Source: Takakia lepidozioides
Lineage: Eukaryota; Plantae; Bryophyta
DNA length: 64,000 nucleotides
Direction of reading: 5' to 3'
Assembly (NCBI GenBank): GCA_030704615.1
Contig: CM060732.1
Coordinates: 21,328,001-21,392,000 of the forward strand
In this document: positions 7,889 to 54,063 of the stretch, piece after piece
How the letters are laid out: every line of letters begins with the position of its first letter
How positions within the stretch are numbered: the stretch's first letter is position 1
Notes under the pieces: model-generated
Told to the model about the DNA's origin: nothing
The model's database searches: none
Seen by the model: the letters and a program-made list of their open reading frames with translations, nothing else
Position numbers and translations under genes: made by a program

Positions 7889-8399
7889 CTGAATGGTCGA
7901 CTTATCCTGCGAAAAGAAACTCAGCTGGACATCGCAGACTAGGAATGATAAAAGATAGTACCCAATGTGAACTAAAAAACAATCTGCTTAGAGACAATTC
8001 TGTCACCGCTTCGCTCATATCACACGAATTGGATTTAATAGGAGGAGGTTCTGGTGAGAGAAACCAACGAGCTGCAACAGAAAATCTCTCACTTCATAGC
8101 ATAACAACGAATCTTTGGACACGGAAAGATCTTTCCACTCAATTAGGAGACGTAATTTATGTCAATCTTCCTTCAAACCATCATAACGCAACCAAATTGG
8201 AGCTCAACAGGCATCACCCGCCCCACTACTCGAATTAAAAACACGTCACGATGCAGAAGAAAATGAGTAAACGAAAGAGACGATCCGTGAGAAGCAGCAC
8301 ATCTACGACACACCCTCATCTCCTTCACACAGCCCGCGGGTCGCACTTGGCGGGAAACAGATGATAGATGGATGGATAAATCGATCATATTTTACATCC

Positions 8400-8811
8400 G
8401 TTGATCTCTTTCATCGTGTGGTTCTGAACACAACGGGGCCATTGCCTGAAACCTCTCATGGGAACAAGTATGTTTTGGTGGCAATTGACCACTATTCGAA
8501 GTGGGTGGAAGGTGCCACCTGTAGCTGATCATTCAGCACTTCTCATAGCTAGATTTTTGGAAGAAGAGATTATTAGCAGGTATGGATGTCCTCGTTTCAT
8601 TCTCACTGACAATGGCACTGAGTAGAAGGCTGAATTTGAGCAAGTGTGCACAATGTATGATATAAAAAGGGAGCACAGTGCCCCCTACTGGCCATAGTGC
8701 AAATGTATGCTGGAGAGAATAATCAAATCTCTAAAGATGAGTATCACCACTTTGGGGGTTGAAAACAGCTCTGATTGGGATAACAACTTGTACCGTGCAC
8801 TCATGGGATAC
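8400..8811 (+). mobile_element. Ty3/Gypsy integrase core (rve) pseudogene, 5' half
   Basis: Translates with stops and a frameshift to GPLPETSHGNKYVLVAIDHYSKWVE...FLEEEIISRYGCPRFILTDNGTE...MLERIIKSLK...WDNNLYRALMGY. Confidence 0.85.
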
Positions 8812-8815
8812 ACTC

Positions 8816-8870
8816 GGGGAGGGAGGGGGACGGGGAGGGGGCGGGAGGGGGGGGGCAGGCGGGGAGGGGG
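8816..8870 (+). repeat. G-rich tract with G-quadruplex potential
   Basis: About 55 nt made almost entirely of G3-G9 runs. Confidence 0.7.
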
Positions 8871-9030
8871 TCACTCCCAAAAATGTAACACGGTACCTAC
8901 ACACAAATGTTTGTACTGGAAAAGGCCTTTTAAAAGCATACAGTTACATAGATATAAATACATAAAGGGGGTTAGTTTTTCAACAAATTACAACTTACAG
9001 ATGGGGGTATAATATTATAATCACAATACT

Positions 9031-9265
9031 TCTTTTTCTTTTTTTTAAATGGAAACACCTGGGAGCGACAGCTCACAAATCAGGCCCCTTGATAGAGAGA
9101 GGAGAAAATAACCTCTTAGTAACCTCGCCGTAAGGCTTTCAGATGCGACACCGCGCAGGGAAGGGGGAACAGAGCGTACCACACCCGTCAAGTAGCAGGA
9201 TTTGACCCAAGGGTCATCCGGATGGCACTCGGTGCACTTTACCAACTGAGCTACTAACTGTTGGT
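9031..9265 (-). mobile_element. tRNA-derived SINE
   Basis: Minus strand has A-box TAGCTCAGTTGG, B-box-like GGGTCAAATCC, a non-tRNA body and an A-rich tail. 8-bp TSD ACAATACT at 9023-9030 and 9266-9273. Confidence 0.85.
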
Positions 9266-10299
9266 ACAATACTAGCTTGTTAACCAATTTGATTGGGTAT
9301 TTCATCTCATATCCTTATGCATATGTGTGACGAATTATGAGTCGATAACAAGATTGCTAAGCAATCTGATTGGGTTTTAGTGAATGGGTAGGATTGAGTT
9401 AGGTTTTGGTCTCCAGGGTGGCGGCGAGAGGAGAGAGGTCTTTCTAGCATTCTATTTGCGATTTCCCTTGTGCTAAGAGGGGCGATGAGGGAACTGGAAG
9501 TTCTAGTCAGTGGTGTATTTTAGTTTATGTTAGTTTGGGATGACAAGGAGGCAACGAGGAGAGAAGACGGTGAAGAGGCAACAAGCTGGAGAAGAGACGG
9601 CGTTGGCACGCCCATGAGAGGCAACCAGAAGAAGAGATGGTGAAGAGGCAACGAGGAGAAGAGACGACGGTGGCACGCCCATGACTAAGGTAGTTTTTCC
9701 TCTTTCTTAAAATACTTGTACTTATACAGTGATCTATAGATAGAGTAGATTGTGAGAAGGAAAAGAGGGGGAAGGAGAGAGAAGAGCTAGAACTATTGGG
9801 GTATGGAAAAAAATAGGATATCTTGTACGCAGGTCTAAAGTTGTGAAGGTCGATAGAGAGGTTATTGGAATGAGGCGACCAGCGATCGACAAGGAGTGGA
9901 ACGAAGCGATTAGTTATCGACAAGGCGTTCTAGCCTCGAGCGAGCTTCCTTCCCAGGGTGCCTTTGTGAATGTACGAGCTCTTTCCATGAGCTCTTTTCA
10001 TGTAATAGATCATAATTTTGCTTCTGTGTCAGAAATTAGCACGTGATACATCTAGGCATCACGCATGTCCAATGACGTCTGAAATGCCTTATTAAAGTGC
10101 ACTGATTTTGCACTGATTTTCTAAGCTCACCAAAGATGACAATCAGATAACCTAGTTCGAGACAGATCAAATGATCTTCCTTTTACATACGAGGATTAAC
10201 CGGTGGACATGATTGAGAAGTACCATAATTCTTCATACAGTGTTCAAGAATCACGGACGAACCGCACCAATATCAAATTCATGATTGCTACGTTATAGT

Positions 10300-17945: not shown

Positions 17946-19737
17946 TCAGCAAGGATTGAGGCTTAACCCAATCAGTTCCATGCATCTAGAATGCTTTTCT
18001 TTGGATAGAGCCTTTGTGAGTGCATCAGCTGCCATGTCCTCAGTCCTACAGAAAACCAACTCAATCTCCAAACCAATCATTTCTCTAATGAAATGATGTT
18101 TGATATCTATGTGCTTGGTCCGGGCATGAAGAACAGGATTCTTGCTCAGCTCAATGCTGCTCCTGTTATCAGCATGCACTTTCGTTGGCTGTTCTTGACT
18201 GAAGCCAAGTTCACGAAGAAGCCTTCGAATCCAAATGGCTTCTTTAGCTGCATGAGTCAGAGCCATATACTCTGACCCAGTCGAGGATAGTGCAGTGGTC
18301 TGCTGTCTTTTGCTGCTCCAGCTCACAGCACCTCCACTCATTACAAAGCAGTAGGCAGATATGGATCTCCTCTCATCTGTGTCTCCTGCCCAATCTGCAT
18401 CACTGTATCCTTCTAGTGATGCTCCAGTGTCCTGCTTGTTGTAAGTTAGACATGTATCCGCAGTCCCTTTCAAATATCTAATCACCCTCTTGAGTGCTTT
18501 CCAATGCTGAGGTCCTGGGTTGTGCATGAACTTACTGAGCACTCCCACTGCATAGGCAATGTCTGGCCTGGTGCCAATCATTGCATACATCAGAGATCCC
18601 ATGGCTTGCTGATATGGAACCTTAGCCATTTCCTCAATCTCACTTGGAGATTTTGGCTCCATCTCCTTACTCAGCTTGCAGCCGGTTTCCAATGGTGTTG
18701 GTGCTGGTTTGCAGTCCTGCATACCAAACTTCGCAACAACATTCCTGACATACCTCTCTTGGCTCAACTTTATAGTTCTCGCCTGGAATCTGAATTCCAA
18801 GTAGGTAGTTCACGGCTCCAAGATCAACCATCTCAAAGGTTTCACTCAAATCATGCTTCTGCCTGCGCATGGTGTCCTTGTTGTCGCTGATCAGTAGCAG
18901 GTCATCCACATAGAGTGCTATTATCACGACACCTGATGTCATGTAGTAAATGCTCTGATCAGCTGTACTCCTTTCAAAACCTTGGCCTGCCAAGTAGCTA
19001 TTGATCTTCTCATACCCTGTCCTCGATGCCTGTTTGAGTCCATATAACGATTTCTTGAGCCGACACACCTTATCACCTTCTTGGAAGCCTTCTGGTTGTT
19101 TCATGTAGATCTCCTCCTGGAGATCCCCATTCAAGAATGCAGTCTTCACGTCCATGTGTTCTATCTCCCAGTCATGCTTCGCTGCCAATCCCAGCAGACA
19201 TCGGATGGAGGTGAACTTTGCCACCGGGGCAAAGGTTTCATTGTAGTCGAGCCCTGCAGTCTGTGTGAAGCCTCTGGCCACAAGTCTGGCCTTGTACTTC
19301 ACTACCTCATTGTTGGGTCCTCTTTTCACTTTGAAAACCCACTTGCAATCTACCGCCTTTCTACCACCAGGCAGTGTTACCAGCTCCCAAGTCTGGTTTT
19401 TTTTCAGAGATTTCATCTCCTCTAGCACAGCTCCCTCCCACTCATTGGCATCATCCCTTGCCAAAGCGTCTTTGAGGGTGGCTGTCTCCTCTGCATCATC
19501 AAGGGCATGGAAACAACTTTCCATCTGCCCTATATCCATAGTCAGACCAGTCAGTCCTTCTGCCACATTAGCTCCAAACCTTTCTGGGGGTTTGCTGATC
19601 CTTCCTGACCTTCTAGGCCCCCCATCCTTGTCAATAGGATCCTGATCTTCAGAATCTTCATCCTCTTCTGGTTTCTTTGCCACCTTCTCCCTTCGAGTGT
19701 AGACCTTTAGTACTGGTTGTTCCCTTTCTTCTCCCAC
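17946..19737 (-). pseudogene. Copia reverse transcriptase + RNase H, one frameshift near 18795
   Basis: KYKARLVARGF, MDVKTAFLNG, LKKSLYGLKQA, LYVDDLL; YSDADWAGD, RTKHIDIKHHFIRE, ADALTKAL. Confidence 0.93.
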
Positions 19738-19738
19738 A

Positions 19739-20395
19739 TCAGGGATTTGTCACAGGAACGAAGATCCTTGGGCTTTGTCTCTTTCCCAAAACTATCAGGG
19801 CATTGTCCATACTTGAGCTACCCCTAGTCAGCTTGCTTTCTTCCATGATAAGTTGTGAAGTGACATACTTCCAACTCAGTCTACTCTTACCATGAGTAGC
19901 CAATGCGGTTTCCACCATGTCATAACTCTTTGGCAAGGTGCCAAACAAGGTCATGATCTGAAGTGATTCAGTCATGGGTTCTCCTGCATCAATTATCTCC
20001 AGACACATGGCTTTAACAGTGGCAATGTGAACGGCTACACTCTCACCTTCTCTCATTCTCAAGTCCATGAGCTGTTTCCATAGGACATATGCTTTCCCCA
20101 TCGCATCTGTCTCATACACCTCACATAAGCTCTGCCAGACCTCATGAGCAAATGTAAGATTCCTTACCAACACTACCAGATTTGATCTCATGTTTGTGAC
20201 CAGAGCTGCCATTGCAAGCTCATTCTCTTGGATCCATGTGGCCTCCTTCAAGTTATCCTCTGAAGGCTTTTTAGTCACTATTGACCACAGGCCCTTGGAA
20301 GAGAGCAGGAGCTTCATCATGTAGATCCAACTCTTATAGTTGTTGCCATCAAGTGGCTCAACTGTCCAAGTAGTTGTAACGTCTCGTGGGCCCAT
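19739..20395 (-). pseudogene. Copia gag (UBN2-type)
   Basis: LDGNNYKSW...LLSSKGLW...AHEVWQSLCEVYE...LFGTLPKSYD. Confidence 0.85.
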
Positions 20396-25440: not shown

Positions 25441-28400
25441 TCAACGCTTCTTCCGCTTTTGAGGTCGCCCTTCGAAAGCTGCAACCGCCTCGGACGCGTT
25501 TCCCATTTCTGAGGCACGCACCCAAGATGCCTCCACATGATGATAGCCCTTCCATTTGACGAGATACTCCGTTTCTCGGTTCTTGAACCTCCTCGACTTA
25601 AGTATTGCCTCCACCTCGTACTCAGGTTCATTTTCATGATCCAACAGCGTAGGTGGCGGACGCAACACTTGATGCCGATTCGGACGTGCTTCATCTTTGA
25701 AGTAAGGCTTCAAAAGGGAGACATGGAATACTGGGTGCACTTTGCTGTTTGCCGGCAGCTCCAATTCATACACATCCTCATTCATTCATAACCTTCCGAA
25801 TGCGAAAGGGTCCCGCATACGGAGGCACGAACTTCGGGCTCACTTCAGGAGGTAGTCGGAAATTCTTGATGTTCAACCAGACCTCCGTGCCTGCCTCAAA
25901 CTTCACTTCCCTCCGCTTCCGATTCGCCTGCCTTTCATACCGTTTCCTAGCTTTGGCAATGTTGTACTTTGCGAGCTTCAACAAACGCTCGCGTTCTTCC
26001 AGTACCGCCGCTACTGCCGGTTCCTCAACGTCCTGGGCGGCCCAACTTGTCGGCACCAGAGGTGCTTTTCCATAGACCAATACGAAAGGGGAAACTCCCG
26101 TTGCGGAGTGTTCTGTGTTATTATAACAGAACTCTACCGCGTCTAAGTGTTCCACCCAGTCTGATTGGTCTGTCGACACGTAATTCTGCAAGATCTGCTT
26201 CACTACAGAATTCACTCTTTCCGTTTGGCCGTCGGTCGTAGGTCGAAAGGTGGTGCTCATCTTCAGCCTCGTCCCCCTTTAAGACGTGGGCAAAGTAAAG
26301 TCGCCCTGTCTCCTGCGCCGTTGCCGTCTCCTTGATGGGGATGAAATGTCCCATTTTACTGAACCTATCCACCACCACCATGATTGCATCGAATCCTTTT
26401 GACAGCGGCATAACAGTCATGATGCATCGAGACGCTTTCCCAAGTCCCCTCTGGAATCGGCAAGGGTTGTAATAGCCCCGCTTGCTTTTTGTACTCGCTC
26501 CGGTTTTGTTGGCATGTGGTGCATGTCTTGACATACTCCTCTGCCTCCTCCCTCAGTTTGGGCCAGAAATACTCCTTCTTCAAGAGTGCCGCAGTGCGCT
26601 TGGCTCCGCCGTGGCCCGCAAGCGGGCTATCATGGCATTCTCTCAAGAGACTATCCCTGATCCCTCCCTTCGGCACGTAGAGACGCGTTTGCTTATACCG
26701 GAGCAGTCCATTTTGCAAGTAGAACTGCGATTTAACCCCCATCCTCAAGTCTTGCATCACGGACTTCGCCAGCTGTTCCTTCCGGCAAGCCTTCCGGATC
26801 TTCCTTTGGAGTGCCGTCTCGCCCCTGTGCACCAACATGAGCTGCTGCTTTCTACTTAAAGCATCGCCACCACATTGTCCCGTCCCGGTTTGTACTGGAT
26901 ATCCACGTCGAACACCGCCAAAGTATCTTGCCACCTAAGTTGTTTTGGGGACAACTTGGGCTGCGTGGCAAAATACTTCACCGTGACATTGTCTGTGAAC
27001 ACCTTCACTGGGTTGGAACCAACATAGTGGCGCCAAAGCTCAAGGCAATGCACCACTGCCTTCATCTCTTTTTCGTGCGTCGGCCACCGTCACTCCACTT
27101 CATTCAGTTTCTTACTTTCATAAGCCACTGGACGTCCATCTTGCATAAGTACACCCCCAATCGCGAAGTCCGATGCATCTGTATGAATCTCAAACGGACG
27201 ATCGAACTCGGGGATTTTCAAGACTGGAGCTTCCGCCATCCACTGCTTCAATTCAGCAAAAGCTTGGCCACAAAAAGTATTCCATGCCCAGACTTTGGAT
27301 TTACACAGAAGGTCAGACAGCGGCCCCGCGATCTTGGCGAAATTTCTCACATACTTCCGGTAATAGGAGGCGAGTCTTAGGAATGATCGCACTCCCGGGA
27401 CCGAAGTCGGAGGCTCCCAGTCCAAGATTGCCCTCACCTTTCTGTCATCCATTTTGATCCCACCCTGTATAATCACATGCCCCAAGAACTCCACTTTCGT
27501 GACCCCGGCACTTTGAAGCTTTGGCATACAGCTTCCCTTCCCGCAATTTCTGGAACAGCCTTTTGAGGTGCTCCTCCTTTGTTTTCGAGTACACCAAGAT
27601 GTCGTCGATGTACACGATCACAAAGTCATCCAACCACTCCTGAAAAAGGCTGTTCATTAGCGTGCTAAAGGTCGCGGGTGCATTGGTGAGCCCAAAAGGC
27701 ATCACCAAGAACTCATATGAACCATACCTTGTCCTGCACGCGGTCTTCTCCTCATCTCCTTCCGCCACCCGAATTTGATGGTAGCCGGAGCGCAAGTCGA
27801 TCCGGCTGAAGTACTTCGCTCCTGCCAACCGGTCGAAAAGGTCGTCGATCCTTGGCAAAGGGTACCGGTTTTTAATAGTCACCTTATTCAGAGCCCTGTA
27901 ATCGACACACATCCGCAACGTCCCATCCTTCTTGTCTGCGAATAGCACCGGGGCTCCGTAAGGTGACTTACTCAGTCGGATGTACCCCTTTGACATTAGA
28001 TCCTTGAGCTGAATCTTCAGCTCGACCAACTCTCTGTGGCTCAACCGGTAGGGCGCCTTGGCAGGCGATTCCGATCCCGGTATCACCTCAATCTTGTGGT
28101 CAACTCCTCTTCGCGGTGGCAAGCCGCTTGGTAAATCCTCCGGCATCACATCTTGGTATTTCTCCAAAATCCCCTTGATCCAATCTGGGCTCGGCTCCCC
28201 ATCGCCTTCTCCCTTCACTTCTCTAATGTAAAGCAAAAACTGGGGTTCGTGTGCCTCCTCCACGGCCCACTCCCTTGCTGACAGAAGGTTTATTCGCCCT
28301 CCCACGGATTTGGGCGTTTCCGACACTCGTAAGACCTCGCCACCATTCCCACATGGCAGCGTGACTACTCTCTTGCGGCCATCTATGACCGCTCCGGATT

Positions 28401-29872
28401 TGCTCAAAAAGGTCATCCCCAAAATGAGATCTACTCCATCGATCTCGCAGATGGTGAAGTTCTCACGTCCCTCCCAACTCCCCAGTTGAAGAGGAACATC
28501 AAACGCCAACCTTGTCGCCAACTGTGGTTCTTCTTTGGCAGAACGCACCTCAATAGAGGCCCCCACGTCACTTGTCGGGAGTCCCAGCTTTTGTGCCGTT
28601 GCCGGTGTCATGAAGGAGTGCGACGCTCCTGTGTCCACCAACAATGACACGTTAGTTCCGGATATTATCCCATCCACGAACAGTAACTGACTCCTTTTAC
28701 GTAAGGCGCCAATTTCCTGATACAACTCACAAGAAAATGTGCCTACCTTGCAAGTCCTGGCGACCACCGCTTCCACCAGGCGACTGATGGTATTTTCTGA
28801 CAGCTCTGTGGTCGCCCGAGTCATGTTCAACTGTCGGGGCTTTGTGCACTTCTTGGCCATGTGCCCGGGCTCCCCGCAATTGAAACACACTCCATCAAAG
28901 GTCGCCTTCTGTCCGCCATAAGCCGCTGCACCTGCTTTTCCTTTCGGAGCACCAGGTGCAGCCTTGACGTGTGAAGGCCCTCCCTTCGATTTCCACGTGC
29001 CATTATCGCCGCGTGGCCTATCCCACTTTTTTTTTCCGGTCGGAAAGAGTCACCTTCCCGCCGGGCCTTCTTGTGGTTCAGCTCCGTACGGCCTTGTCTT
29101 TCACCCCTAGGGACATCCGAGAAACATTCCGCCCTCTCAATTGCCTCGTTCAAAGTCTTAGGCGGCTTCTCCTCCAACTTCCGCCTGGCCCATGGGGCCA
29201 ATCCCGCCACAAAGTTGAAGACCATTTCTAGTTCTGCCATGTCCGCGACTTCGAGCAGCAGCACATTGAAAGCCTGAACATAACCCCGAATGTCATCCAT
29301 TTGCTTCAAATTCCTCATCTTGTCCCGGGCAAGCCAGGACGCGTTGAGGGGCACAAACTCTCTTCATCAATTCCTTGAACCCACTCCAGTTCAAGGTTTC
29401 CGGGCTCGGATCTCGGTCGTGAAGGCATTTCTGCCACCATTGTTGAGCATAGCCCCTCAAATAGGTGGGAGCCACTTCCACCCGATCCTCGTCACTCAAC
29501 TTGGCCGCCCGGAAGTACTACTCTAGCTCCAGGAGCCAGGTGTTGAGTGCCTTCCGATTTCGGACGCCCTCGAAGGTGTCGGGTTCCTTAGGCTTCACCT
29601 TAAACTTTGCCTTAGTGGAAGTGGCATTAGCCGCCTTCAACACGTCTTTCAACGTCCCGCCAAACTACGCCAACAACCCTTCCCAAAAGGCTGCCGGCAT
29701 GGGAGGCATCTCTTGGTTTGTCGGAGCTCTCAAGGATTCCTCGGGCTCCGACTCCTCGAGCGGCCTCGTTTTCGGAAACATGCATCGTTTCCTCAAACGG
29801 CCGCCTCGGTGACACGTTGCCCCCATCTGGCTCACCAGGATCATCATCTTTTGGGCCGTTCCGCTTCCGCTT
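25441..29872 (-). pseudogene. Chromovirus gag-pol, multiply frameshifted
   Basis: [14 protein letters not shown]; [10 protein letters not shown]; [11 protein letters not shown]...YIDDIL; TDASDFAIGGVL; HDSPLAGH...CTTC; DGQTERVN; chromodomain EYEVEAIL...YLVKWKGY (25441-25785). Confidence 0.93.
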
Positions 29873-41274: not shown

Positions 41275-44200
41275 CTATTGCGACTGATGTAATGAGACCA
41301 TGGAGTCCAACCTAAGACGGGCAGATGCTACAATCTCTCTCTGAGCCTGAAGTTGCTCCAGGAGTGCGGAGAAAGCAGGGAATGTATCTTCAACTGCAGG
41401 GGCTTGGAAAAAGGCAACATCATGCTGTAGCTGCTCCAAAGCAGCAGTGGCATTCTGGAGCTCTGCCCGCTGCAATTCCACTTGCTCCAAAGTGACACCC
41501 ATGCTTGCTTGCACCTGTTTCAATCACAACCCCTCTGAATTATATTGGACGTCCTTCACACAGTGCTGGTGAGAAGAACATTGTATGTGCCAATCTGGAC
41601 AGATGGAACCCTCTTTGGTAACCTGTTACTCACATTGGTCACATAGGAGTTGATCTAAGGTGATCAATGGATTGATGTTGATAGGTTTTGGGCCAAATTT
41701 ACTTGATCCATTTCACGGTTAAAGATCCCCATTCTGGCTTGTTCAGGCCATCAGAAGGATTATAATACACGAAAGCTACTTGATATGTAACTGACAAAGT
41801 GAGCATGAAACCCACCGGTACTCTTTGTTTTAATAAGAATGGCGGAGAGGCTATCACAAAAAGATAATTACCACAGAAAGACAGTGCCTTCTTACCTGTT
41901 TCATCACCTTTAAACGATGGCGTGCATTATTAGCTTGCAAGCTCAATGAGGCGGCTCGTTGAGCATGCTCCTTGGCTTCAGTTTCCGCACGTTGGATTTG
42001 TTGACACAGCAAAGTGCGTTGTGCCTCTGCTACTTTTTCAGTGCGCACCCATGCTTCGTACTCCTGTTTGGCTTGCTTCTGAAGTGCAATCACTTTTCTT
42101 TCCTCTTCAAGCCAATTTATGTCCTGTACGCCCTCCAGCACTTCTCGTGCCCATTCCCCATCTTGGCCTGCCCATAAACAGTCCAACAGTAATCAATCAC
42201 CCGAGTCACAGCTGATGATCCGAAGGTTACAAGGCCATATTTGTGGTACAGAGCTGACAGGATAGGCTAAGCAAACCTGGCAGAAGAAACCCCTGGCAGC
42301 AGCCATAAGGGCGGTTCCAGCTTCTTTTGTGTCCAAGTTCACATTGCTTATACTGAAAGCAGTTAGCAACACTGGTTATGATATAGATTTATCAGTCATT
42401 GCCTAATTGCATTGACTTCAATGGCCACTGCACTCTGACACAATAAGAAGCGAAAAGGTACTTCTGTGTTGTGGCACTTCCTTGATTAATAACAGAGAAA
42501 GATCTTCCACCTAGCAATTCCAGGCTTTTCCAAAAGGCTGCTATACAGCTCATTCCTTGTGGGAACCAGCTACACCCAAGCATACGGACTAAGTGTTTCA
42601 AGACTAGGAGGAAGCCAAAGACAACATATGCTGTGATAGGAACAAATATGGTTTGGTCAATCTGTGCTAATGTCACCAAAGCCACTTGTGACTAGAAATA
42701 CAAGTAGTCATTCAATCTTCTACATTTTTGGACCCAGTTAGGACCAGGGAGAAATATGTACTCATGTGTCAACTATCTGGTATAGACAATAGAAATAGCA
42801 GGTGATGGGAACTCAATCCAATGTGCTAAACTACAAGAGGATGGGGACATGAGACCCAAATGGCTGTTGACGTCGCCAAGGGCATCAAGCTCCTCCTTAA
42901 TAAGTTGCAAGACATCATATACTTCGGTACTGAGAGAGCTGCGCTCTTTCACCAACTTGTGAGCCTCCATGACTTTCTGCTGCAAGGGCTGATACGAGGC
43001 CCTCTCGGTGTCTCTCAACACCAGTACTGCCATTGAGAGTTGCTTCTCCATCTCCTCCAAGTCAATGCTGCTCACTGCACACTCCAACCTCTTCTTCCAA
43101 AAGTTCAACAAGTCAGACTTTTTACTGCAACCAGGACACTGAAACTCTCCATCCAGCCCAGATTTATTGGACACACCCGCTTGTTGGGCTTTATAAGCAC
43201 ACAAGAAGTGGCACGTGTGAGAACATGCTGCGCACTCAAGCACCTTCCACTTCTCATTGGGCAAAGATCCAACCTTGCAGAAACTGCACATACATCCTCG
43301 ACAAAAGGACAGATCATCAATGCAGATCTTGCAAAAGCAAGTGCTGCCTGCTTGCTCAAATTCTCGTCGTGTCAAACGTGATATGCTTTGGCTTTGCCTA
43401 CCACATTCAGTCTCCTTCCTTGCTTTTTCTCCTGATACTCTCTCGTCTCCCTGTCCTCCACCAATGTTGGCCAACTGTGCATTTACCGGTCCACCTTGAT
43501 CCTCAACCTGTTTATTGATCATTGGCGGGCATATGCTTTCTGAGACCACCACAGCTGCTTTTACGTGTTCAATATGTCCAGAAAGCTTGTGGTCATGGGC
43601 TACTTCTCCAGCCTGCATAGGCAGCACATCTTCTTTTTTGGTCGACTCCAGAATTCCAGTTGTGGCGAGTGCTGCTGGTGGGCTCTCTACAGGTTTTAAG
43701 TTCTCAACGGTGATGCTGGAATGCAAAACAGAACCTTCCTCTGCAAGCACAATTGCTGTTGTCATTGTGACCACTTGATGCGGATCCAGATCATCCAATT
43801 CATTTCTGCCCCCTTGATCACATAAGAGCACTGAACTGCTGGATGGAACAGCCACTTTAGGAAGCTTGTCGGTAGGAGACTGTATCTGGCAGGCCACCAG
43901 CGGGCTGCCACTGGGGTCAACAGCCACCTTCTGAAGGGCATGCACTGGAGACTGCACTTGACCAACCTCCAGCAAGCACCAATACCGCTTGTGCTTACAC
44001 CGCCACTCAGCACACAGGGAAGCAAGTTCAATCTTGCCTAGGGAAGCAGGGGGCTCCTCGTTTCTTAAAATTGAAACAAACACACGGAGCACATGGGCAT
44101 GATAGCGAACTAAGTTGCTCACCTCCAGATTCCGTTTCAGCAAGAGCCCCCGAAACTCAGCCATTTCTGCTGGACTCTTCATCTTCAATTGTCCTGCTTC

Positions 44201-45570
44201 CTCCATAAACTGTTGAAAGTCGGCATTCTCATTGTATAGCCATTTGTAGCTGGATGCACTTGACAGAATAGACCTGAAGGAATGTGTGAGAACACCAGCG
44301 GATCGTGCTTCCATTTTCTTCTTATTTCCGGGTAAAAGGTTTGATGGAGCAAACGGTATCACTTTATGGGGAATGCTGATTTTTGGGAATATCCTCGTCT
44401 TGTCAGTTTGCACCTGCAAGCATCCACTAACCCATGCTGCCATCAGATGTGCACATCCTATGTTCCACTTGAAAGCCCCCAGTAACATCTCCTATCTCCT
44501 ACCTTTCCCACCCTCCACTCTCAGCCTAGTACCTGCAGATGTGAAAAGCAAGAGTCCATCACTTTCTTAATAAAAGTGTCTGCCAGGAAACATTCTCAGC
44601 AAGCATATAAGGCAGAAACAAGTTCCGCAGGACTTCCTTACCACCATGAATTGGCGTGCTTGCACACTTAGAACTAATCCCAATCCAGTGTCTGGTAGAT
44701 TGGTAAGAGCTCAAAAAAAGATCCTACTAAAACCAAAAAAAAAAACAAAAAAATTGCAGTATGTTGCTTGCTTTGGAATAGTTTCCCTCCAAAATTTATA
44801 ACCAATCACTGACAAGTGTGCAGGAATTAGGACAACTGGCTATGGCTTCACTGAAAGAGAGGAGTTGCCTTGAGAGGTGAAAGGAGTGGAGACTCCTTCT
44901 TCTTGCGCTTCTTCTGGGAAGGTAAATCATAAGCTTGAGCTTGCCTCCGCCGTCTTTTGGTAGTATCTAGGACTCCAGGCAACGGCCCGTCCTTGTATTC
45001 TTAGGCACAACAACACATTGTACAGATTTCACTTGTAGCCCACATTGAAGAGAAGAGAACTTGTGAGTTCACACTATGCATCCATATTTTTGTGACATTT
45101 ACAAACAGAAGCCTCATAGGGCAGGCTCAGGATTTTTAGTTTTCCCAGATAGAAAGAGAGACATGTGAAGGATCCCCTCCACTGGAATTAATTCTACTCC
45201 CCAGAAGTTAACACCCACTAGAAAATCCGATCAACTGCTCGTCAAGTACAAACATGTTACCCCTGATCAACGGTTGCATTGGTATACTGTATACCATAGA
45301 AGTTCGATCTACAACTCAAACAAAGAAAATTTACAGTAAACAATTACCATCGGGGGATATCCGCCAGCAGAAATCTTTGAAGGGAGGAGGGTTGGGTAGA
45401 GTGGAAAGGTAGTCCTGCAGTTGTATCTGTGAGCGAATGCGCATTCCTTCAGGCGAGATGAAATACATGTCCGACAGCCTTTGACCTGCTTTCCATTTCC
45501 AATCCTTGGGTGCAAAAGGGGCCCCGTCTCCCGTTCGCCCTGCTAATGGATGGGGAATATCATGCGACAT
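41275..45570 (-). CDS. MBD-like domain + Oberon-type PHD finger + coiled-coil protein
   Basis: Exon 45570-45348 (GAPFAPKDWKWKAGQRLSDMYFISPEGMRIRSQIQLQDYL). Probable exon ~44999-44869 (KKRKKK NLS, GC donor). Large exon 44413-~42860 (CFCKIC...FCRGCMCSFC...CAACSHTCHFLC...LDGEFQCPGC). Coiled-coil exons ~42166-41896 and 41514-41275. Middle junctions are uncertain. Confidence 0.8.
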
Positions 45571-46606
45571 TGTCTCTCTCTCTCTCTCCGTGGACTTTAT
45601 AAAGTCTCTCTCTCCCTCTCCACACACTTCTTACTTCTCAAGGAGGGGCAGGTAGCAGATAATCAGATCAGATGCTATGCTAAGAGAAGGAAGATAGTAG
45701 ATCTCCTCTCAAAAGCCGAATTAGGTTTCCGAAGGTCTAAATACCGAGCAAACAAAGGATAATGTAAGGGTAGTCGCGGGTTGTAATTAAAATCACAACA
45801 AGAGCAGAGATACAAAATGCAACTTGGAACAGGAATCCTTATGAGGACACCTTCGTATGCACACTCCTAGGATTCTTGAACGTGGGTCGACCCAACGAAT
45901 TCCACGTACATTGAGGAGAAAGACAAGTAATGCGGCATCTACCGGCCTTCTCCAGGCAAAGGATTTCAAACAGAGACGATTCCACAAACTGCATCAAATT
46001 CTACTCCACCATTCAAACCTTCCATACACAGATGCGTGTGCAGAACCCACCCCGTCCAACCCTCTTCTGACGAAAATCCGTTGCACTAATCCTCCTCAAC
46101 ATCCAAATCCCCCCCTAACAAACACCAAACACCAAACGACAGCCCCGCCCTGATTCACAATCAAGAAGCTTGCATCCCTCTCTCTCTCTCTCTCTGTCTT
46201 GCTTGCGATTGTTGAGAGGGAAGCAGCCGCTGCACGGTTTGGAAGTTACAATCGTTTGCTCCAAACGGCCCGCGCAGTGAAAGTGAAACCAACACAAGGC
46301 ACGAATATTAACCCTCATAGTAACACTGGACCACGGATGAGAACTGTTCCATTCATTGACAGTTACTCCTGGATGAACGAATCTCCGAGCAACGACTGCG
46401 GCTGAGGAACGAGTTTCGTCGAATCGAATTTCTGAATAAATGTAATTAACATTTCCAGCAAACCAGCATATGCTAAAAATAATGTTTAAAAAGAGAAAAA
46501 GAGTCTTTTCCCCCTGCAGAGGGAGAAAGACTGCAGCATAAACAAGAGCCCACTTGTCCCAGCAAGCCTTCTTTCTTCCCCTCGCTTCTTTCGAGGGTGG
46601 GTTCTG

Positions 46607-47335
46607 TCATATGAAAATCCTTTGATTGCAACAAGCCTTTTTGACATGGTAAGCGAAATTTGGATCCAAGAAGTCCATGAGGTCCTTCAAGAGGATTTGA
46701 ATGTTTTGAAGACGTTGGCTTGCAAGATGGTCCCCCTCGTTGGCATAGAGCATAAAAGAGTCGCGAATGGGTTGCACCCATTGCTTCAGAAGCGGCACTG
46801 TGTCTGTTTGCAGACTTTCTCTGAACTTGGCATACCCCATGCACTGTGAAACTCCTGGCTCTTTCTCGACAATCATGAGCTCTCCAAGAGCTGCCTGATC
46901 TCCTCCAAAGATTCTGAAAAGTGGAGGGAAATCAGAAGTGGTGAACACTTCTCGAATTTTAGCAAGAATTCCATTCAGCCTCTTGGTCTTCTGCGTGTCC
47001 CCCAAATCGAGAAATTGAATATCCCTACGAATGATCTCTCTCCAAGCCAGGAACTGGCAGATTAGATACACAGTGTTGTCCACAGCATAATCCTTCTCAT
47101 TCTCGTTACCGTGTGTCCATAACATCACACAGAAGTCCTGGTGAAGAATATTATGAAGTCTGTAGTACAACTCCTTGGCCGATGAGATCAGTGGGTCACG
47201 AAACTTAGACATCGTTTTTATCGACTCCACTCGTTTCCCTCTGTTCAAGAACCATAGTTGCCCCAACAGGTTGGCAAGGGTGGTGACGCATGCTAAAACA
47301 GCTGCAATAATTGCAGCTAAGACTGTTGAGTCCAT
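46607..47335 (-). CDS. Uncharacterised 242-aa protein with N-terminal TM helix and intronless CDS; bacterial-like ('lysogenic protein'-type), HGT candidate
   Basis: Clean ORF MDSTVLAAIIAAVLACV...FRDPLISSAKELYYRLHNIL...NTVYLICQFLAWREIIRRDIQFLDLG...FRIFGGDQAALGELM...CMGYAKF...RLQNIQILLKDLMDFLDP. Motif pattern recalled from bacterial proteins; not searched. Confidence 0.75.
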   Translation of the reverse strand: MDSTVLAAIIAAVLACVTTLANLLGQLWFLNRGKRVESIKTMSKFRDPLISSAKELYYRLHNILHQDFCVMLWTHGNENEKDYAVDNTVYLICQFLAWREIIRRDIQFLDLGDTQKTKRLNGILAKIREVFTTSDFPPLFRIFGGDQAALGELMIVEKEPGVSQCMGYAKFRESLQTDTVPLLKQWVQPIRDSFMLYANEGDHLASQRLQNIQILLKDLMDFLDPNFAYHVKKACCNQRIFI

Positions 47336-49385
47336 CACAATCTTTATAAGAAATGTTGCACAATTGTGAAACCACCATGGAATCTGTAAGTCACCCCAGC
47401 ACAATGAATACAACATTAAGCTTAACAATTAACTGCACCCGGATAGAAAAGGACGTGCACACACTCAATAACTCTGCAAGCAATCTAGTTGGAGCAAGGA
47501 AGCTTCCTCTACCATTTTGCGTCACTGGGCCAGTAATCAATCATGCAAGGTTTCAGCTAGAGACTACCTATTGCTGGAAAGAGTATCATTTGAAGTCATT
47601 GCACTAGTGTGTACACAAGATGACCCTCAGTTGAGATCCCTGGAAATAGATTGCTGTGCCTAACCCGAAATGAAAGATTGAGTAATTTTATCGGTTTAAT
47701 AGCACACTAGCCACTTATTGATGCTGCTCAAGGACATATGCCAACTGAAAACTGACAGATCTTTTAATCTTCCCTACTGTTGTCATGTGAGGAACAGAAA
47801 TGATGGCAGAGGTTTCATCAATCCAGACGTGCCCCAGTTTCACAACTAAGACTACTGCCTTTAGGAATGTTTTCCACTCCTGTATGCAGGAATGATCCCT
47901 GCAAACACTTGCAAATGCTTTAGGACATCTCAGTAATGATGGAAGTTCGCCTGGTGACTAGCAAGATTTATCTGTATTCAAAATCTGTCAAACTCCAGCA
48001 TGTTACTCTAGGAAACCCACAATGGCTGTCTAGGTATCTGTTTCCAACATTTTGGAGATGGTGGTGAGAGGAGCTTACACCACAGCAGCAGCAATCTCCA
48101 AAATCCCCATACCAGAAGAACCTTTGTGGCAGTGTAAATGATGAAAACTTTACAAGGACTTCAGATCTGACATTTGTTAGCAAACAACGGAATCACTCCA
48201 TGCCTAGTAGATGAGTGTCTGCCAAGTGAAAAGCAAATATGCCACCAAAACAGATTAAGCTGTCATCCAGCAGCTCGTTGGGGTCCAGGTCCGGTTGAAG
48301 CCACAAGAGAAAGGGCCATGGTCTAAGGGACACGTCTCGGAGCCTGGGAGAGCTTCGCTGACCTCATGGTGCTTCACAAAGCGAGTGCAATTCACACACT
48401 TTGAGCAAGTTTTTTTGGCCCAAAATATGTGGTTGCACTTGTCTCCTCGTTTTAGATGTCCAAACTATTCTAGAACTCTTTCTCAACCTTCCTCTTCCAC
48501 TGCATTGACCACTGTAGGCTTGCAATTTTGTTAGGCAGAATTCGTCTGTCAGAGACCGAGTCTGGGGGGAACTTGCCACAATCCCTCCCCAACTACCTTG
48601 TTTATAGTCCCTCTCCCTACTTCAAGGCTTTGGATGTCACAAATGAGTAAATTTGGGGAGGGGGAACCAATGGATGCTCCAGCACAAGGGAGGCCATTAG
48701 AGCATATGAACCCTCCTGGATTACGTTTTAATCCACCAGATATAGGAAGAGGCCGTGGGTGTGAGATTCCTCTCTTTCTTTCCTTCGTATGGACAAGTAT
48801 GCAGCGAATACAAAATGCAAGGGAGTGGCAAGAACAATTAGGATGTAAGTTTAACCACCAGGTGATTAACATCTGCAGACAGCTGGAGAAAGAAAGAGAA
48901 AATATCCTTATTAGTATCTAGATATCTCCATACTTGCAATTAATGGCAGCCAAAAAAGCAGTACTAAGAAGCTCTGATCTACGGTTAGAGGGCTTCTCAG
49001 AAGAGAAAACCAGAAACAAACAGCAAAGAAAAGAAAAACCGAGACAGGATAAAAAGAAGCAAGGACACAATAGACACAGATACAAACAGAACAACGAACA
49101 CAGATTCGAGAATTTCGGTATGGACTTGGTGACTCTCTCTCACCAATCATGGACCAAGTAGAACAACAACATGTTCGGTATTGACAAGCCACAATCACTT
49201 CTCCACAGACTTCGTCAGCTCCGGACAGTGGGTATAGGTGTAATGCACAGAACACAACCAAAGTACTGTACTGAGTTTCTGTCAAGTAACGAGAAAACTC
49301 AGACATGTTGTTGGCTATCACGTAACCAAAGTGCCAGGAAACAACAAAGAAGACCAAAAAAGTAAAGAAGTGAGGGGATAAGAAC

Positions 49386-49420
49386 GAAGAAGAAGAAGAA
49401 GAAGAAGAAGAAGAAGAAGA
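49386..49420. repeat. (GAA)11 microsatellite
   Basis: Directly visible. Confidence 0.95.
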
Positions 49421-51577
49421 GAAAATAAAACAGAGAAGAGAAGGAGGATTGGATAAAGGGGTAAGCGAACTCCCTGTAGAAAGAAAGAGAGAAAGATAGT
49501 TTGAGGGAGAGAGAGCAAACCGCACCTGATACTACACATGCTGGCTGGACGTGTTAATACACTCCATGTGCACGATCGAGGTGAGATGCAAGTTCCCTCC
49601 AGAGTAGATCAGCTCCTACATGAACATGCTCCCTTCAACCATGAGCCACTGTGTCAATGCTAGAGCCGCCATAGCCGGGCTATTCAAATGTGATAGCATT
49701 TGTGGCAGCTACAGTGAAGTGAGCCCAAAGTCAACGAGGCAGTGCAAACAGGGTCAAGCCAGGGAGGGCGTGACTGTAAGCTTGAGAACATTTTTTTCCA
49801 CCTGAGTCTTTGACTAGATGAGAGACTAGAGTATACCCGATTCAGGTGTTACGCATCAAAAAATCAAAAGCAGCAGCTATCCACAGAAAGGTGTGCGTTG
49901 CTTATCTGAATGCCCTTCGATGCTATGACAAGGGGGGTGTCGGACTGATTTCTCTCCTGCTTTCAACAATTATGCCACCTTTGGAAATGGAAGATGTGAG
50001 ATGCTCTAGAAAGCTACGACTGCTTCACTTTTGCACAAGCATGCGTGTGTTTTGGATGCTTGTTGGGCTGCGTTGATGCTTGCTAGCAAAGTGTAGTATG
50101 ACTTGCTTGTAGGTCTCCCGGAAGAAAGAGACCTCGCCATGTTGCACTAGCATGGGTATGGACGCCTAGACTGTTCTCCACAGAGGCAAATTGGTCACTT
50201 GGCAGGGGACTTTCAATGTGAACATCCAAGCAAGGGTCCGAACTGAGAGAGATGAGGATGAGGAAACCCCGAAAAGTTAGTAGATTGGGAATCTGAAGAC
50301 AAGCCTATACAACACTATTGCTATCAACAAATTTTCAGACAACGAGTTTCTATTGCGTTACAAAGGGCACAAGCCATTTCTATTTTGCGTTAGGCCGGAA
50401 GTGGCAGGGGCGGCTTCATCTCGCCTCCCAGCTCTTTCCGATCTACTTACTTCAGGCAGTAGGTGATGCTAGATCGGTTGACTGGCTTTGTTGTCTTCCT
50501 ATTTCCCTTTCTCTATGGTGTTTCATTTCTCCACACGGAGGTTCTTGTTGACTCTTGCTCAGTCACCTCATTTCGGTCTTTTATAAAGCTTTACAGAATT
50601 TTGTAAGGAAGATAAGTTGCACAACAGTTGAAAAATCTGATTTCCACTCCCTAAACCTAAAGTTGAATGCCTGCAAACTATTGCCTGCACCCTAAGTATA
50701 GACAATAAGCTTTTAGTTATTAGCTTCCGCCATCTCTCTTCCTGACACTACTAGTACCATTCTCTGGAGTCCTTCATTTTCACAGATCCAAGCAGCTTCC
50801 TCATCTCTATGAAATTGTCCTCACCTCTCCACACGGTCCTGCATTTAGGATTTGTTTTCAGTGGGTGGGGGGTTGTGTCCCTGTGCCACAGTATTGTCAG
50901 ACAGCAAGTGTCACCCAGTTTCAGCTTAAACAAATGGACTTAGTTTCACAACTGGGAGACACAATGTATGATAAACCACTGACACTTCTTTCAAACACAG
51001 GTGACAGTGCATTACTTCAATACATCATCAGTGAAGGCCAAATGTACTTGGAAGAGCTCACAACCGTTCATATCGCCGGATGTGGATGTCGCTCAGAAAT
51101 CTAACCCTCACTGCGTACATATCAGCCACAACCCACCAATTTAATGCGCTGATCCAGTGTAAACTAACCCTTGCCTTAGGTTCCCCATTTCTGATGCCTC
51201 TCTCTCTCTCTCTCATATAGACTCTTTATTTCTTTTTTCTTTCTTCTCTCTCGCCACCGGCAAAGGTTATGTCTGGAAGCAGCTAGAGTAAAGTTTTTGG
51301 TCAAAATGGGAGAGCCACCACAGCTCCTTACTATCTGGCACCTGTTGGGTCCATAGCTGCACCAATGTCATGGCCAACCACAAAGTGTACCTCTCTCAAC
51401 AGCTGCAACCAGCTGCCTCCCATTCTTTTTCTGTAGACCCATTCCTTCCTCTCCAGCTTTCTGTGATCCCTCTCAAAAACTCCAATATGGATGCATGGCT
51501 TTCACAGAAATAATTGGGCCCAAAGAAAAAACGCAGATGGTGGCCTAGAGGAGGTTGGAGGAGTCTGCCAGTGTGAA

Positions 51578-54063
51578 CTAACTTTTGTGTCGTACATTCG
51601 ACCTCTCCTTTTTGAAAGCTTTATAGAGCCCTTGACCAAGAAGCACATTGAGCAAATTGAGACCCAACATGCCCATGAACGCCATTGGCCACTCAATTCC
51701 CTTAGGAAATTTTGAAGCATCAAATATGAGCTTCAGCGTAATGAGAATGTGCAGACACACCCTGGTTGTGACAAATGCTGTCCAGTTCAATACCCAGATC
51801 ACTGTCACCCCTGTGCTCTTCCCCGTCCTCACGCCTGATAGTTTTCGAACTTTGCGCAGATGCAAAAAAACTGAATGCACCTGCCAGTTAGAGAGAACAT
51901 TTATTAATTCTACAGTTGTAACTAGAAACCAGGTTTGACCAAGACTCAAGGAATTCTACAGAATGCACTTTCCCCAGCATCCATTGTCCCCACTGCATTC
52001 ACTGCCAAAGACTTGTATTCATAAGCATCATTTCTTCTGTCATCCTACTAGTTGGCGATTGAGCACGTATATCATTTGGAACACTGATGGCACTGAACAA
52101 TTATGCTTCCCAAAATTGCTGCCAGTTGCAACAGAAAGCTAAACTCTGTATGAAGGGTGTTCCACAGGGCACTTTCTCTATGGGTTGGCCAGTAACTTGG
52201 ACTTTACTCCTACACCTCATGCCAGGAAACACCAAGTGCTGGGGAAGTCAGGCTAAAACAAGGATTGTTAGCTGTATTTGGATTCACATAAGGGAATTGG
52301 CATTCCACTGAATTTTCTAAACTGCCCTCACAGGATCCCTTGTTTGATTCACAAATGTTCTCCACAATCCATGGCCATATACAATGGAGATGGGCCGAGG
52401 ATAATGTTGCAAGGACCTACTCAGAACAAGATGGACGTTACACATCCTACTTTTGGATGCAATAAACAGAAGCACTATGGCAACATGTGGCAGAGCCACC
52501 CTTACAAATAAGCTAAATTCAAGCTAGCTGAAATACTGGATGTCAAATGCATGGTTAAAGAAAGCTGGGACTTAGTGTGCAAATTTCCCAGATTTGTAGA
52601 GGAAAGGAGAGAGAATCTGCATAAGCCACGAAACTACCTCACAAACAAGGGTGAGGATCAAGTAGTTGACGGTGACATTCCGAAACAGAGCAGGCGTGAA
52701 GCAGGCGAGAAGAACTGCATGATGGACAAGGAGAGAAGGTGCTCTTGGCGTATAAAGATGCTTCCGCAACATATCCCATTGGTCATAAGCAAAGTAGCCA
52801 CAGGATGCCGCCAACACCGTGTACGCCCCCTCCCAAGGTTTGCTGAAGAGAACATCATGAGACAGCATCGGTTCCAATTGGGTCACTTGGGCCTCCCTCA
52901 TGATCAATCCCACAACTGCATTTCCCAAATTTCTTCTGTTAGTCGTGTCTTTGAAGTCTGTAAATTTTCTCTCTAGCCAAAGGACGGCACTCTGCCATTT
53001 CTTACTAGAGTGTGGTTGATACAGTTCAACCATCAATAATAGAGACCAATTTCCATTATTGTTGGCATTGTGCTAGAATCTAACCCTGAATTCAACATTC
53101 AATAAACGCTGTCTGTAGATTGCCTAGAGCTACGTACAAGCACCATGCCACCATGAATCTGCTGAGGGTTTACCAGGCCGAATTTGGTAAAACACTACAT
53201 CATGTTTTGTGTCATTAAGCAGGCCTACAATTGTATTGTATTTAGTTGCACTGGCGTGTGAAAGATTTGTGCAGTGATTCCCTTGATGTATTGAAAAGGA
53301 TAGACAGGCAGATGAGGTAGCTAGAAGGAGGAAGGACCAGAGCATTTGTTTTCATTGTTTGCTTCACAAGGAGGTTCAAGTCAATGTGTGACAGGTAGGG
53401 TCTGGAACATGGCAAGGGTGGGGGAGCTGGTGAGAATGAGATGGGACAGTGCCTGCATATGAGGGAAGAGTTGTGGGAGAAAGAGAGGTTAGTTAGAGAC
53501 GTCACTGGCAGAAGGTTGGCGTTTACTGTAGTCCTTTGTATCAGCCCAGTGTGGATTTCAGCCTCTTGGACAAGTGTCTGATAGATTGACAATTGGGTGC
53601 CTACTATTGATGGTTGCACTGTATTAACCACACTATAGTTAAGAAATGGCATAGTGTAGTCTTTGGCTAGGAGAGATTGACACATGGAAAAAGAGGAAAG
53701 AGAGAGAGATATAACACATACCTTACCTGACAGAGAGACAAGGGTTGAATGCAGCAGAGATATGGATGTGTTCAAAAAGTCTGAGCGAGACTCGGAGGCG
53801 AGCCCTTGAAAAAGCCCCTCATTGCTCCTTATGAAGAAGGCAAGTGCCTTATTAGAACCCTCAAACAATAAAAAGCTTGCAAAGATTGGCCATAGCTCCC
53901 TGGTTCCCTCTGTTATCTTCATGGTCACCACCAAAAACCACAAGGCAAGAAGGAGCGCAAAGAAAATTCCTGGGGCATCCTTTCTCCACGCACTTGCGAT
54001 AGACTTCTCAACTGACATCTTGACCTCCTTCCTACTCTCGACTACGGAGTCCGATGGTGCCAT
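51578..54063 (-). CDS. TLC (TRAM/LAG1/CLN8) domain membrane protein
   Basis: Exons 54063-53727, 52915-52638, 51880-51578, in phase. Motifs SISLLHS, SCGYFAYDQWDML, LVHHAVL, TLVCEVHSVFLHLR, FVTTR. Confidence 0.92.

Follow-up and report, generated by a model that had tools for sequence, protein, structure and literature searches.

The locus described here raises the question of how a gene for a membrane-anchored protein of bacterial appearance came to lie among ordinary plant genes. It belongs to a stretch of 64,000 nucleotides (nt) from the moss Takakia lepidozioides (assembly GCA_030704615.1, contig CM060732.1, positions 21,328,001 to 21,392,000 of the forward strand), which we call the window at its full length and whose positions are used throughout. 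The gene is represented by an open reading frame (ORF) of 242 codons at positions 46607 to 47335 of the minus strand. A sequence-only reading had taken this ORF for a candidate horizontally acquired bacterial gene and possibly a domesticated defence effector. With a probability of roughly 0.75, we consider it a true nuclear gene that a moss-grade plant gained horizontally from bacteria and that encodes a single-pass membrane protein.

An intronless coding sequence (CDS) whose nearest relatives are all bacterial could simply be a bacterial contaminant or the product of a chimeric assembly. We compared contigs of four sequencing runs with window positions 44300 to 50200; as these are contigs, the transcript ends and expression levels derived from them are approximate. 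One run (X1) is a DNA run, probably of the source sample, and two others (X5 and X6), from the same organism but from two other studies, consist of RNA-like contigs. A single X1 DNA contig of 9,245 nt spans 44300 to 49026 free of mismatches, leading from the neighboring Oberon gene through the ORF into an intron. One contig each in X5 and X6 joins position 47383 to position 49526, and since this joint is absent from the X1 DNA contigs, the X5 and X6 contigs represent spliced transcripts. The intron thus removed is of the GT..AG type, and its excision connects the coding exon with one that lies 2.1 kb farther upstream (Table 1). When the two exons are joined to read the frame, an in-frame stop codon precedes the splice junction by two codons, which makes exon 1 non-coding and means that translation can start no earlier than the ATG at 47335.

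Between 46410 and 47383, the RNA-like contigs follow the genome without a break and place the 3' end of the transcript near 46410, and one X5 contig extends exon 1 beyond 50200. Neither X5 nor X6 differs from the assembly in the CDS, and both carry a C>G change at 46592 in the 3' untranslated region (UTR). The composition of the ORF equals that of its flanks, with a GC content of 0.45 in the 2-kb bins around it and a third-codon-position GC content (GC3) of 0.52 versus 0.46 to 0.53 in three neighboring plant exons. Furthermore, no bacterial sequence more than 45% identical to the protein was found. Because the gene has a spliced 5' UTR intron and plant genes at its flanks (the PHD_Oberon neighbor is itself spliced in the RNA contigs and has its best named relatives in Sphagnum), contamination and misassembly are excluded for the gene at 46607 to 47335, the chance of a contaminant or chimera being vanishingly small. 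The features that the sequence-only reading had described at this locus, namely, an intact 242-codon ORF without an internal intron and normal spliced plant genes around it, were all recovered, and the expression that it had left to be checked is documented by a spliced transcript in the contigs of two studies.

By sequence comparison, the moss protein belongs to the PHROG 5606 or "lysogenic protein" family. Pfam holds no family for it and NCBIfam returned a chance-level HAD match only (E 0.21), whereas PHROG 5606, whose function is unknown, matches residues 35 to 227 with an E value of 7.9e-26. Among 5.8 billion proteins, a word-indexed search retrieved 32 relatives; the best is 41 to 42% identical, and the few that are named come from Streptomyces and Catellatospora. 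An exhaustive HMMER search (phmmer) of 1.84 billion cluster representatives yielded 960 relatives at E<=0.001, of which 550 reached E<=1e-10; the best were 43 to 45% identical to the moss protein, and none exceeded 45%. Scanning one genome per bacterial species gave 173 relatives, whose taxa include Cyanobacteriota, Actinomycetota, Acidobacteriota, Chloroflexota, and Thiotrichaceae and whose genera include Nostoc, Leptolyngbya, Phormidesmis, Thiomargarita, Ca. Marithrix, Ca. Manganitrophus, Streptomyces, Catellatospora, and others. Among 50,697 GenBank phage records, tblastn found one match, P2-EC58 "proviral Z-region, ORF1," annotated as "putitive lysogenic protein" (CAD54907.1) and 31.6% identical to the moss protein over residues 47 to 225 (E 4e-20). 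The gene for P2-EC58 ORF1 is present in 413 of 5,426 complete Escherichia coli genomes (about 8%). The closest E. coli copies, such as WP_087889723.1 and WP_000536231.1, likewise carry the annotation "lysogenic protein," so that the family name given in the sequence-only reading was correct.

The motif series given there is also real, being common to the 31 nearest bacterial and metagenomic proteins (alignment A1). It comprises R46, R59, N62, Y83, E100, R103, D110, Q147-R148, E152, C165-x-G167, R208, and Q213, followed by D218..D224-P225 and a C-terminal R-F-P..R. Of 39 columns conserved at 90% or more in 31 bacterial sequences, the moss protein keeps 33, including all 14 invariant ones; Q57, A93, R148, R229, P231, and R237 are lost. 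Conserved polar residues of the kind that the sequence-only reading took as a hint of an active site are thus present in the family, but one of them, R148, is gone from the moss copy. The family architecture combines one N-terminal membrane helix with a helical domain of about 190 residues, in about 230 to 260 residues overall. When 26 longer members were examined for fusions, we found only a NAL1-like protease (2 members), GerE (1), and DUF6424 (1), which gave no functional clue. Two bacterial members, P0036 (622 residues) and P0043 (557 residues), are extended at the C terminus by a segment that matches NAL1_N weakly and contains a trypsin-like G-D-S-G motif; in these, the membrane-anchored domain is fused to a NARROW LEAF 1-like serine protease.

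The moss protein shares this architecture. Its single hydrophobic segment lies within residues 1 to 30, Kyte-Doolittle windows of 19 residues exceeding 1.6 only at starts 1 to 12, and hydropathy and an AlphaFold2 model agree on the N-terminal hydrophobic helix and helical domain noted previously. Since the basic residues R32, K34, and R35 follow the anchor, the positive-inside rule predicts that the C-terminal domain faces the cytoplasm, and by the same rule, the conserved domain of the bacterial members would also be oriented toward the cytoplasm. The AlphaFold2 model, built from a 32-sequence alignment, is all-helical and confident (mean predicted local distance difference test score [pLDDT], 89.9; predicted template modeling score [pTM], 0.80). 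In this model, a long helix formed by residues 3 to 65 carries the membrane anchor into a helical bundle, and a small hairpin at residues 155 to 165 is the only non-helical element. Models of family clusters taken from the ESM Atlas can be superposed on it with template modeling scores of 0.78 to 0.84 over 215 to 228 residues. Among solved structures, a sequence search of the PDB returned nothing, nor did Foldseek against the PDB at E<=0.001. The highest VIA-align scores (Z 8.4 to 8.6), for FliD and ClyA, are helical-bundle background, and both proteins were set aside as structural relatives. A Z value below about 13 is uninformative for helical bundles, and this applies to the ClyA pore protomer (Z 8.4) and XaxA (Z 6.5) alike; Foldseek compared the model with ClyA-type alpha-helical pore-forming toxins at E 0.3.

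The only other eukaryote-like copies that emerged lie at two metagenomic loci, on ENA contigs ERZ26858887 ctg241914 and ERZ25067493 ctg163933. The cluster representative P0053 is located on a 1.55-Mb ENA metagenome contig (L007) with sparse, short gene calls, where the full ORF has 283 codons and an N-terminal anchor of its own. A profile made from the window protein and the L007 ORF retrieves P0206 at E 3e-99, far above all bacterial matches, and P0206 lies on a 38-kb contig (L088), adjoining a prephenate dehydratase (PDT) gene that is split into several exons. L007 carries a gene for the spliceosomal U6 RNA at 6556 to 6655 (minus strand, 89 bits), 3.2 kb from the homolog. This U6 small nuclear RNA gene on L007 and the split PDT exons on L088 show that both contigs are eukaryotic; both have a GC content of 0.54. 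In the Atlas, a PDT exon matched bacterial fragment clusters only. The U6 gene has a TATA-like box at about -30, and no upstream element of the presumed land-plant type was seen before it. On L088, two tandem prephenate/arogenate dehydratase genes with short exons occupy 5353 to 9274, just upstream of the homolog, and a YchF/OLA1 C-terminal exon is found at 1839 to 1985. The L007 and L088 copies are 73% identical in nucleotide and 67% in protein sequence, a similarity that is confined to the gene, with a ratio of nonsynonymous to synonymous substitution rates (dN/dS) of 0.26 at a dS of 0.85. Neither contig shows synteny with the window. Relative to the bacterial consensus, all three eukaryote-like proteins have derived features in common: F-G-G ahead of the Q-R/A motif, C-M-G-Y-A, and A-Y-H where bacterial members have the C-terminal R-F-P.

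In an IQ-TREE analysis of 65 rows (LG+C20 by posterior mean site frequencies, rooted on the E. coli copies, a root that was assumed and not inferred), the window protein, the L007 protein, and P0206 form one clade with an ultrafast bootstrap of 98 and a Shimodaira-Hasegawa-like approximate likelihood ratio test (SH-aLRT) value of 96, and FastTree, run on 168 rows, recovered the same pair. Apart from the eukaryote clade, the nodes that enclose it (support, 95/98) contain bacterial rows only, and the E. coli copies lie farthest away in the tree. These sequence comparisons support an origin of the moss gene from bacteria via horizontal transfer, as had been suspected, with the moss sequence nested within the bacterial tree. 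The sequence-only reading had also named no seed-plant counterpart, and three protein searches, including NCBI and UniRef and with Sphagnum proteomes present, found no named plant homolog, an absence that rests on protein databases that lack the window's own protein. Two scans of Joint Genome Institute (JGI) metagenome contigs, one for patterns of the eukaryote clade and one for peptides of the window protein, yielded no relative.

The three eukaryote-like copies in one clade, only about 40% identical to the moss copy, would also fit an old split, as in an ancient green-lineage gene that was inherited vertically and owes its bacterial look to reverse transfer or to sparse sampling of eukaryotes. 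However, the eukaryote clade is small and lies inside a bacterial diversity that spans many phyla and hundreds of representatives, the Sphagnum proteomes in the database yield no match, and the eukaryote copies show no synteny with one another. We consider such vertical descent highly unlikely.

Does the bacterial family have anything to do with defence? PADLOC RTasTM (models PDLC03799 and PDLC03013, labeled "DRT," with no curated cut-off given) matches residues 74 to 191 of the moss protein at E 3.4e-8, over profile positions 89 to 200 of 229. It also matches 29 of 32 aligned family members, with a best E value of 5.6e-10, together with the copies from E. coli and the bacterial rows closest to the moss protein, and across the family the matches are co-linear over most of the 229-position profile (positions 30 to 213). 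By these profile matches, the family would at best be a sister family of the RTasTM-type proteins. From the model name and the "DRT" label, for which we found no confirmation in a paper, we take RTasTM proteins to be one-helix proteins encoded beside reverse transcriptase (RT)-nitrilase genes. Transmembrane (TM) partners of the UG1/UG5 reverse transcriptases have been described (TM clusters 85/1858; PMC9226505), as has drt1b; the DRT1 system that was examined did not require DRT1b, whose role is a matter of conjecture (PMC13275509). An "RT-nitrilase + 1TM" anti-phage system has been validated (PMC9122126), and the membrane proteins of such RT systems are thought to be suicide effectors (PMC9122126, PMC13275509).

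The E. coli copies occur in two settings. Some lie at the Z/fun variable locus of P2-like prophages, flanked by tail sheath and tail-fibre-assembly genes, and one copy from a P2-like prophage is that at 1178730 to 1179428 of NZ_CP043217.1; the other setting is the accessory (moron) region of a lambdoid prophage. The variable loci of P2 and P4 are documented reservoirs of antiviral systems (PMC9122126, PMC13586616). Outside this group, the nearest bacterial relatives of the moss gene are stand-alone genes amid housekeeping genes, and only the enterobacterial branch warrants the label "prophage family." At some loci, genes for GmrSD/AAA_15, Zeta-toxin, or STAND NTPases turn up within a few kb, but not systematically. 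A single locus of the family was found among 2.9 million IMG/VR contigs and a single record among the GenBank phages, even with the E. coli protein as the query; plasmids carrying the family number four. Both the housekeeping surroundings and the near-absence from phage collections count against a defence reading.

Considering these data, we propose the following scenario. A bacterial gene would have moved into eukaryotes by horizontal transfer, probably entering only once, because the moss copy groups with the copies of another intron-bearing eukaryote. After this single entry, the gene would either be ancient and have been lost many times or have moved later from one eukaryote to another. 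In the moss, it has acquired the structure of a eukaryotic gene: the first exon is non-coding, a GT..AG intron of 2.1 kb interrupts the 5' UTR, and GC3 matches that of the host. The bacterial proteins may be stand-alone sensor-effectors or membrane-perturbing proteins at the inner membrane face, used in conflicts with phages; given the distant RTasTM homology and the E. coli prophage setting, we put the chance that the family acts alone there in such conflicts a little short of even. Since the moss copy keeps the modeled fold and most of the conserved residues, it probably retains some membrane-associated activity. That this activity serves defence or cell death in the plant seems unlikely. 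Very unlikely is the most far-reaching version, in which a family of phage-conflict membrane effectors has been kept by at least two eukaryote lineages and acts in the moss as a membrane-acting immune or cell-death protein.

Several observations weigh against this scenario. With regard to the transfer itself, the eukaryote grouping brings together a pair of long branches, of 0.93 and 1.22. Its closest bacterial neighbors in the tree are a short metagenome contig, at 84/83, followed by a cluster that includes Thiomargarita and Marithrix, at 79/67; sister nodes with such support point to no particular donor lineage. With regard to retained function, the dN/dS of 0.26 concerns the L007/L088 pair and not the moss copy. 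The 5' UTR of at least 595 nt contains 11 upstream ATGs (uATGs), which argues against efficient translation; one of them, in a CCATGG context 44 nt upstream of the start, opens an overlapping out-of-frame upstream ORF (uORF) of 57 codons. The near-invariant R148 (the Arg of E-Q-R-A-I-G-E) and the C-terminal R-F-P..R are lost in the moss copy, and the charged (coiled-coil) linker of about 20 residues found in most members is missing from it, as it is from three bacterial sequences (P0012, P0013, and P0023). With regard to phage conflicts, the RTasTM match to the moss protein is weak, its 31 bits being at the score level of a related family rather than of a member, and the literature searched holds no anti-phage phenotype test of any family member. 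Moreover, BLASTP clustering of the ORFs within five genes of the homolog in 72 bacterial loci revealed no conserved partner and no reverse transcriptase. The recurrent neighbors were a carboxyltransferase, a biotin carboxylase, a histidine kinase, an amidohydrolase, Dus, and a ThiL-like protein, and as no neighbor family occurs in more than 7 of the 72 loci, the gene has no operon partner.

The defence-derived effector of the sequence-only reading is, on balance, weakly supported. The RTasTM match and the E. coli settings at the P2 hotspot and in lambdoid prophages speak for it, and the missing partner, the missing reverse transcriptase, and the rarity in phage collections speak against it. 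Similarly, the prophage and defence-island surroundings that it had anticipated for the bacterial homologs were found in part: E. coli copies do lie in prophage variable regions, whereas the nearest relatives of the moss gene stand amid housekeeping genes and defence genes are not systematically close by.

The leader with its 11 uATGs, including the CCATGG-context uORF overlapping the start, and the loss of 6 of 39 strongly conserved positions, R148 among them, could instead mean that the ORF is a transcribed relic, open and spliced but little translated and drifting toward loss. It would agree with this that a collection of 15 billion proteins contains neither the window protein nor a relative closer than 45%, and that JGI metagenome contigs contain no close relative. 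However, 242 codons have stayed open, and 33 of 39 conserved columns, with all 14 invariant ones, are kept despite about 60% divergence from every relative. The AlphaFold2 model is of high confidence, GC3 is adjusted to the host, and three accessions or studies agree in every letter of the CDS but not in the 3' UTR. We consider a relic unlikely.

Alternatively, the moss protein may be a co-opted immune or cell-death executor, that is, a domesticated anti-phage membrane effector of the DRT1/UG5 type that disrupts membranes or signals upon attack. The distant RTasTM homology across the family would suit this idea, as would the E. coli members at the P2 Z/fun hotspot and the suicide role envisaged for the membrane proteins of such systems (PMC9122126, PMC13275509). 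Furthermore, the gene has been retained and is expressed in a eukaryote, and the L007 and L088 copies are under purifying selection. Against it stand the close bacterial relatives, which lie amid housekeeping genes without partners, and the fact that the literature searched holds no tested defence phenotype for any family member. R148 and the C-terminal motif are lost, and the uATG-laden leader argues against efficient translation. A homodimer prediction for two copies (score, 0.01) gives no verdict either way, and the similarity to the ClyA protomer lies within helical-bundle noise. We regard an immune executor as quite unlikely and retain a horizontally derived, single-pass membrane protein as the best explanation of the moss gene.

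Table 1. Mapped features of the moss gene and its transcript, in window positions
Feature	Position	Strand	Basis and remarks
ORF	46607..47428	minus	Program ORF list; first ATG at 47335 gives 242 codons + stop
CDS	46607..47335	minus	242 codons + stop, wholly inside exon 2
N-terminal membrane helix	47246..47326	minus	Residues ~4-30 (~27-residue anchor); predicted by hydropathy and model
Conserved helical domain	46652..47212	minus	Residues ~42-228 (~190 residues); common to the PHROG 5606 / "lysogenic protein" family
Exon 2 (48 nt of 5' UTR, CDS, ~197 nt of 3' UTR)	46410..47383	minus	X5 (46502-47383) and X6 (46410-47383)
Intron in 5' UTR, spliceosomal, 2,142 nt, GT..AG	47384..49525	minus	X5/X6 joint; donor and acceptor sequence
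Exon 1, non-coding 5' UTR, minimum extent	49526..50072	minus	X6 and X5 contigs
High-copy repeat inside the 5' UTR intron	48831..49421		Summed X1 contig depth rises from 26 to 88-355; partial contigs, loose ends

The genes that flank the ORF are plant genes. The downstream neighbor, the PHD_Oberon gene at 42773 to 46165 (minus strand), includes one exon of 571 codons, shows introns at 44413 to 44867 and 45000 to 45347 in the RNA contigs, and is most similar, among named relatives, to proteins of Sphagnum fallax and S. magellanicum (44 to 45% identity), which marks the source as a moss-grade plant only distantly related to Sphagnum. Its 5' end near 46165 is separated from the 3' end of the focal transcript by only about 245 nt. 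This gap contains a (GA)n/(CT)n microsatellite at 46185 to 46215, around which DNA reads are seemingly cut (46166 to 46209). Upstream, the minus-strand neighbor at 51578 to 53036 (ORFs 52572 to 53036 and 51578 to 51949) appears by eye to consist of exons for a multi-pass membrane protein, possibly TLC-domain-like. A mechanically called ORF of 204 codons at 48911 to 49525 was rejected as a gene of the locus; it lies in the repeat, has a long Ser run, matches no Pfam family, and is probably transposon debris.

Elsewhere, the window holds a Nucleotid_trans protein gene, a DUF4487 protein gene, and long terminal repeat (LTR) retrotransposons, and the latter, 17 to 28 kb from the focal gene, account for all of its reverse transcriptases. 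The retrotransposon ORFs in 17946 to 20395 and 25778 to 29354 are of copia type (RVT_2) and gypsy type (zf-CCHC, aspartyl protease, and RVT_1), and the GC content rises to 0.52 to 0.55 at 24 to 30 kb, where the gypsy element is located. A further run (X7, "plant metagenome") yielded contigs at 3 to 4x that match the intron and flanks almost perfectly within 44833 to 49476; none of them covers the ORF, which at so low a depth does not bear on its presence. The X7 match at 47497 to 47911 has one mismatch and a 9-nt deletion relative to the window, and the X7 material is probably an environmental sample that contains this species or a sister to it.

The moss gene adds a new and cleanly documented case of horizontal transfer, in which bacterial ancestry, the gained 5' UTR intron, and expression can all be drawn from data. 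What sets it apart is that an uncharacterized family, related to the membrane partners of RT defence systems, has persisted in two or more lineages of eukaryotes. In bacteria, this family is common among filamentous and soil species and occurs in about 8% of complete E. coli genomes, in prophage variable regions. Retention in eukaryotes marks an activity that would work without a bacterial partner, which makes the family a tractable single-gene target. If the family proves to be one of defence effectors, the moss gene would become one of the few eukaryotic genes known to descend from anti-phage systems, and if it also had an immune or cell-death role, it would provide a further, so far undescribed link between bacterial and eukaryotic immune genes.

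Comparison with known systems clarifies where the moss protein stands. With the one-helix proteins of RT-nitrilase systems, it shares the length class (229-position profile), the N-terminal membrane anchor, and a co-linear match that is weak yet significant (E 3e-8 to 6e-10), and it differs in that neither a reverse transcriptase nor a nitrilase is encoded nearby in the plant or in the 72 bacterial loci. Closer are P2-EC58 ORF1 and the E. coli copies, which agree with it in family, size (232 versus 242 residues), N-terminal helix, and motif series and which, as in the plant, are single genes without a partner; unlike the moss gene, they are prophage accessory genes and retain R148 and the C-terminal R-F motif. 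The chromosomal bacterial members (Nostoc, Thiomargarita, Ca. Marithrix, Streptomyces, and Catellatospora) are 36 to 45% identical to the moss protein over their full length and have the same architecture and predicted fold, whereas most possess the charged linker of about 20 residues, they have housekeeping neighbors, and a few are fusions. Bacterial genes fixed in moss and other bryophyte genomes by horizontal transfer are a known phenomenon, with many families reported, and the transfer itself is therefore unsurprising. We found no description of the PHROG 5606 family in a plant in the literature, and it differs from those other families in having neither a known function nor a Pfam model. 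Like the bacterial genes already known from bryophytes, the moss gene combines an intronless bacterial CDS with acquired UTRs and an acquired intron; it is expressed and lies between plant genes.

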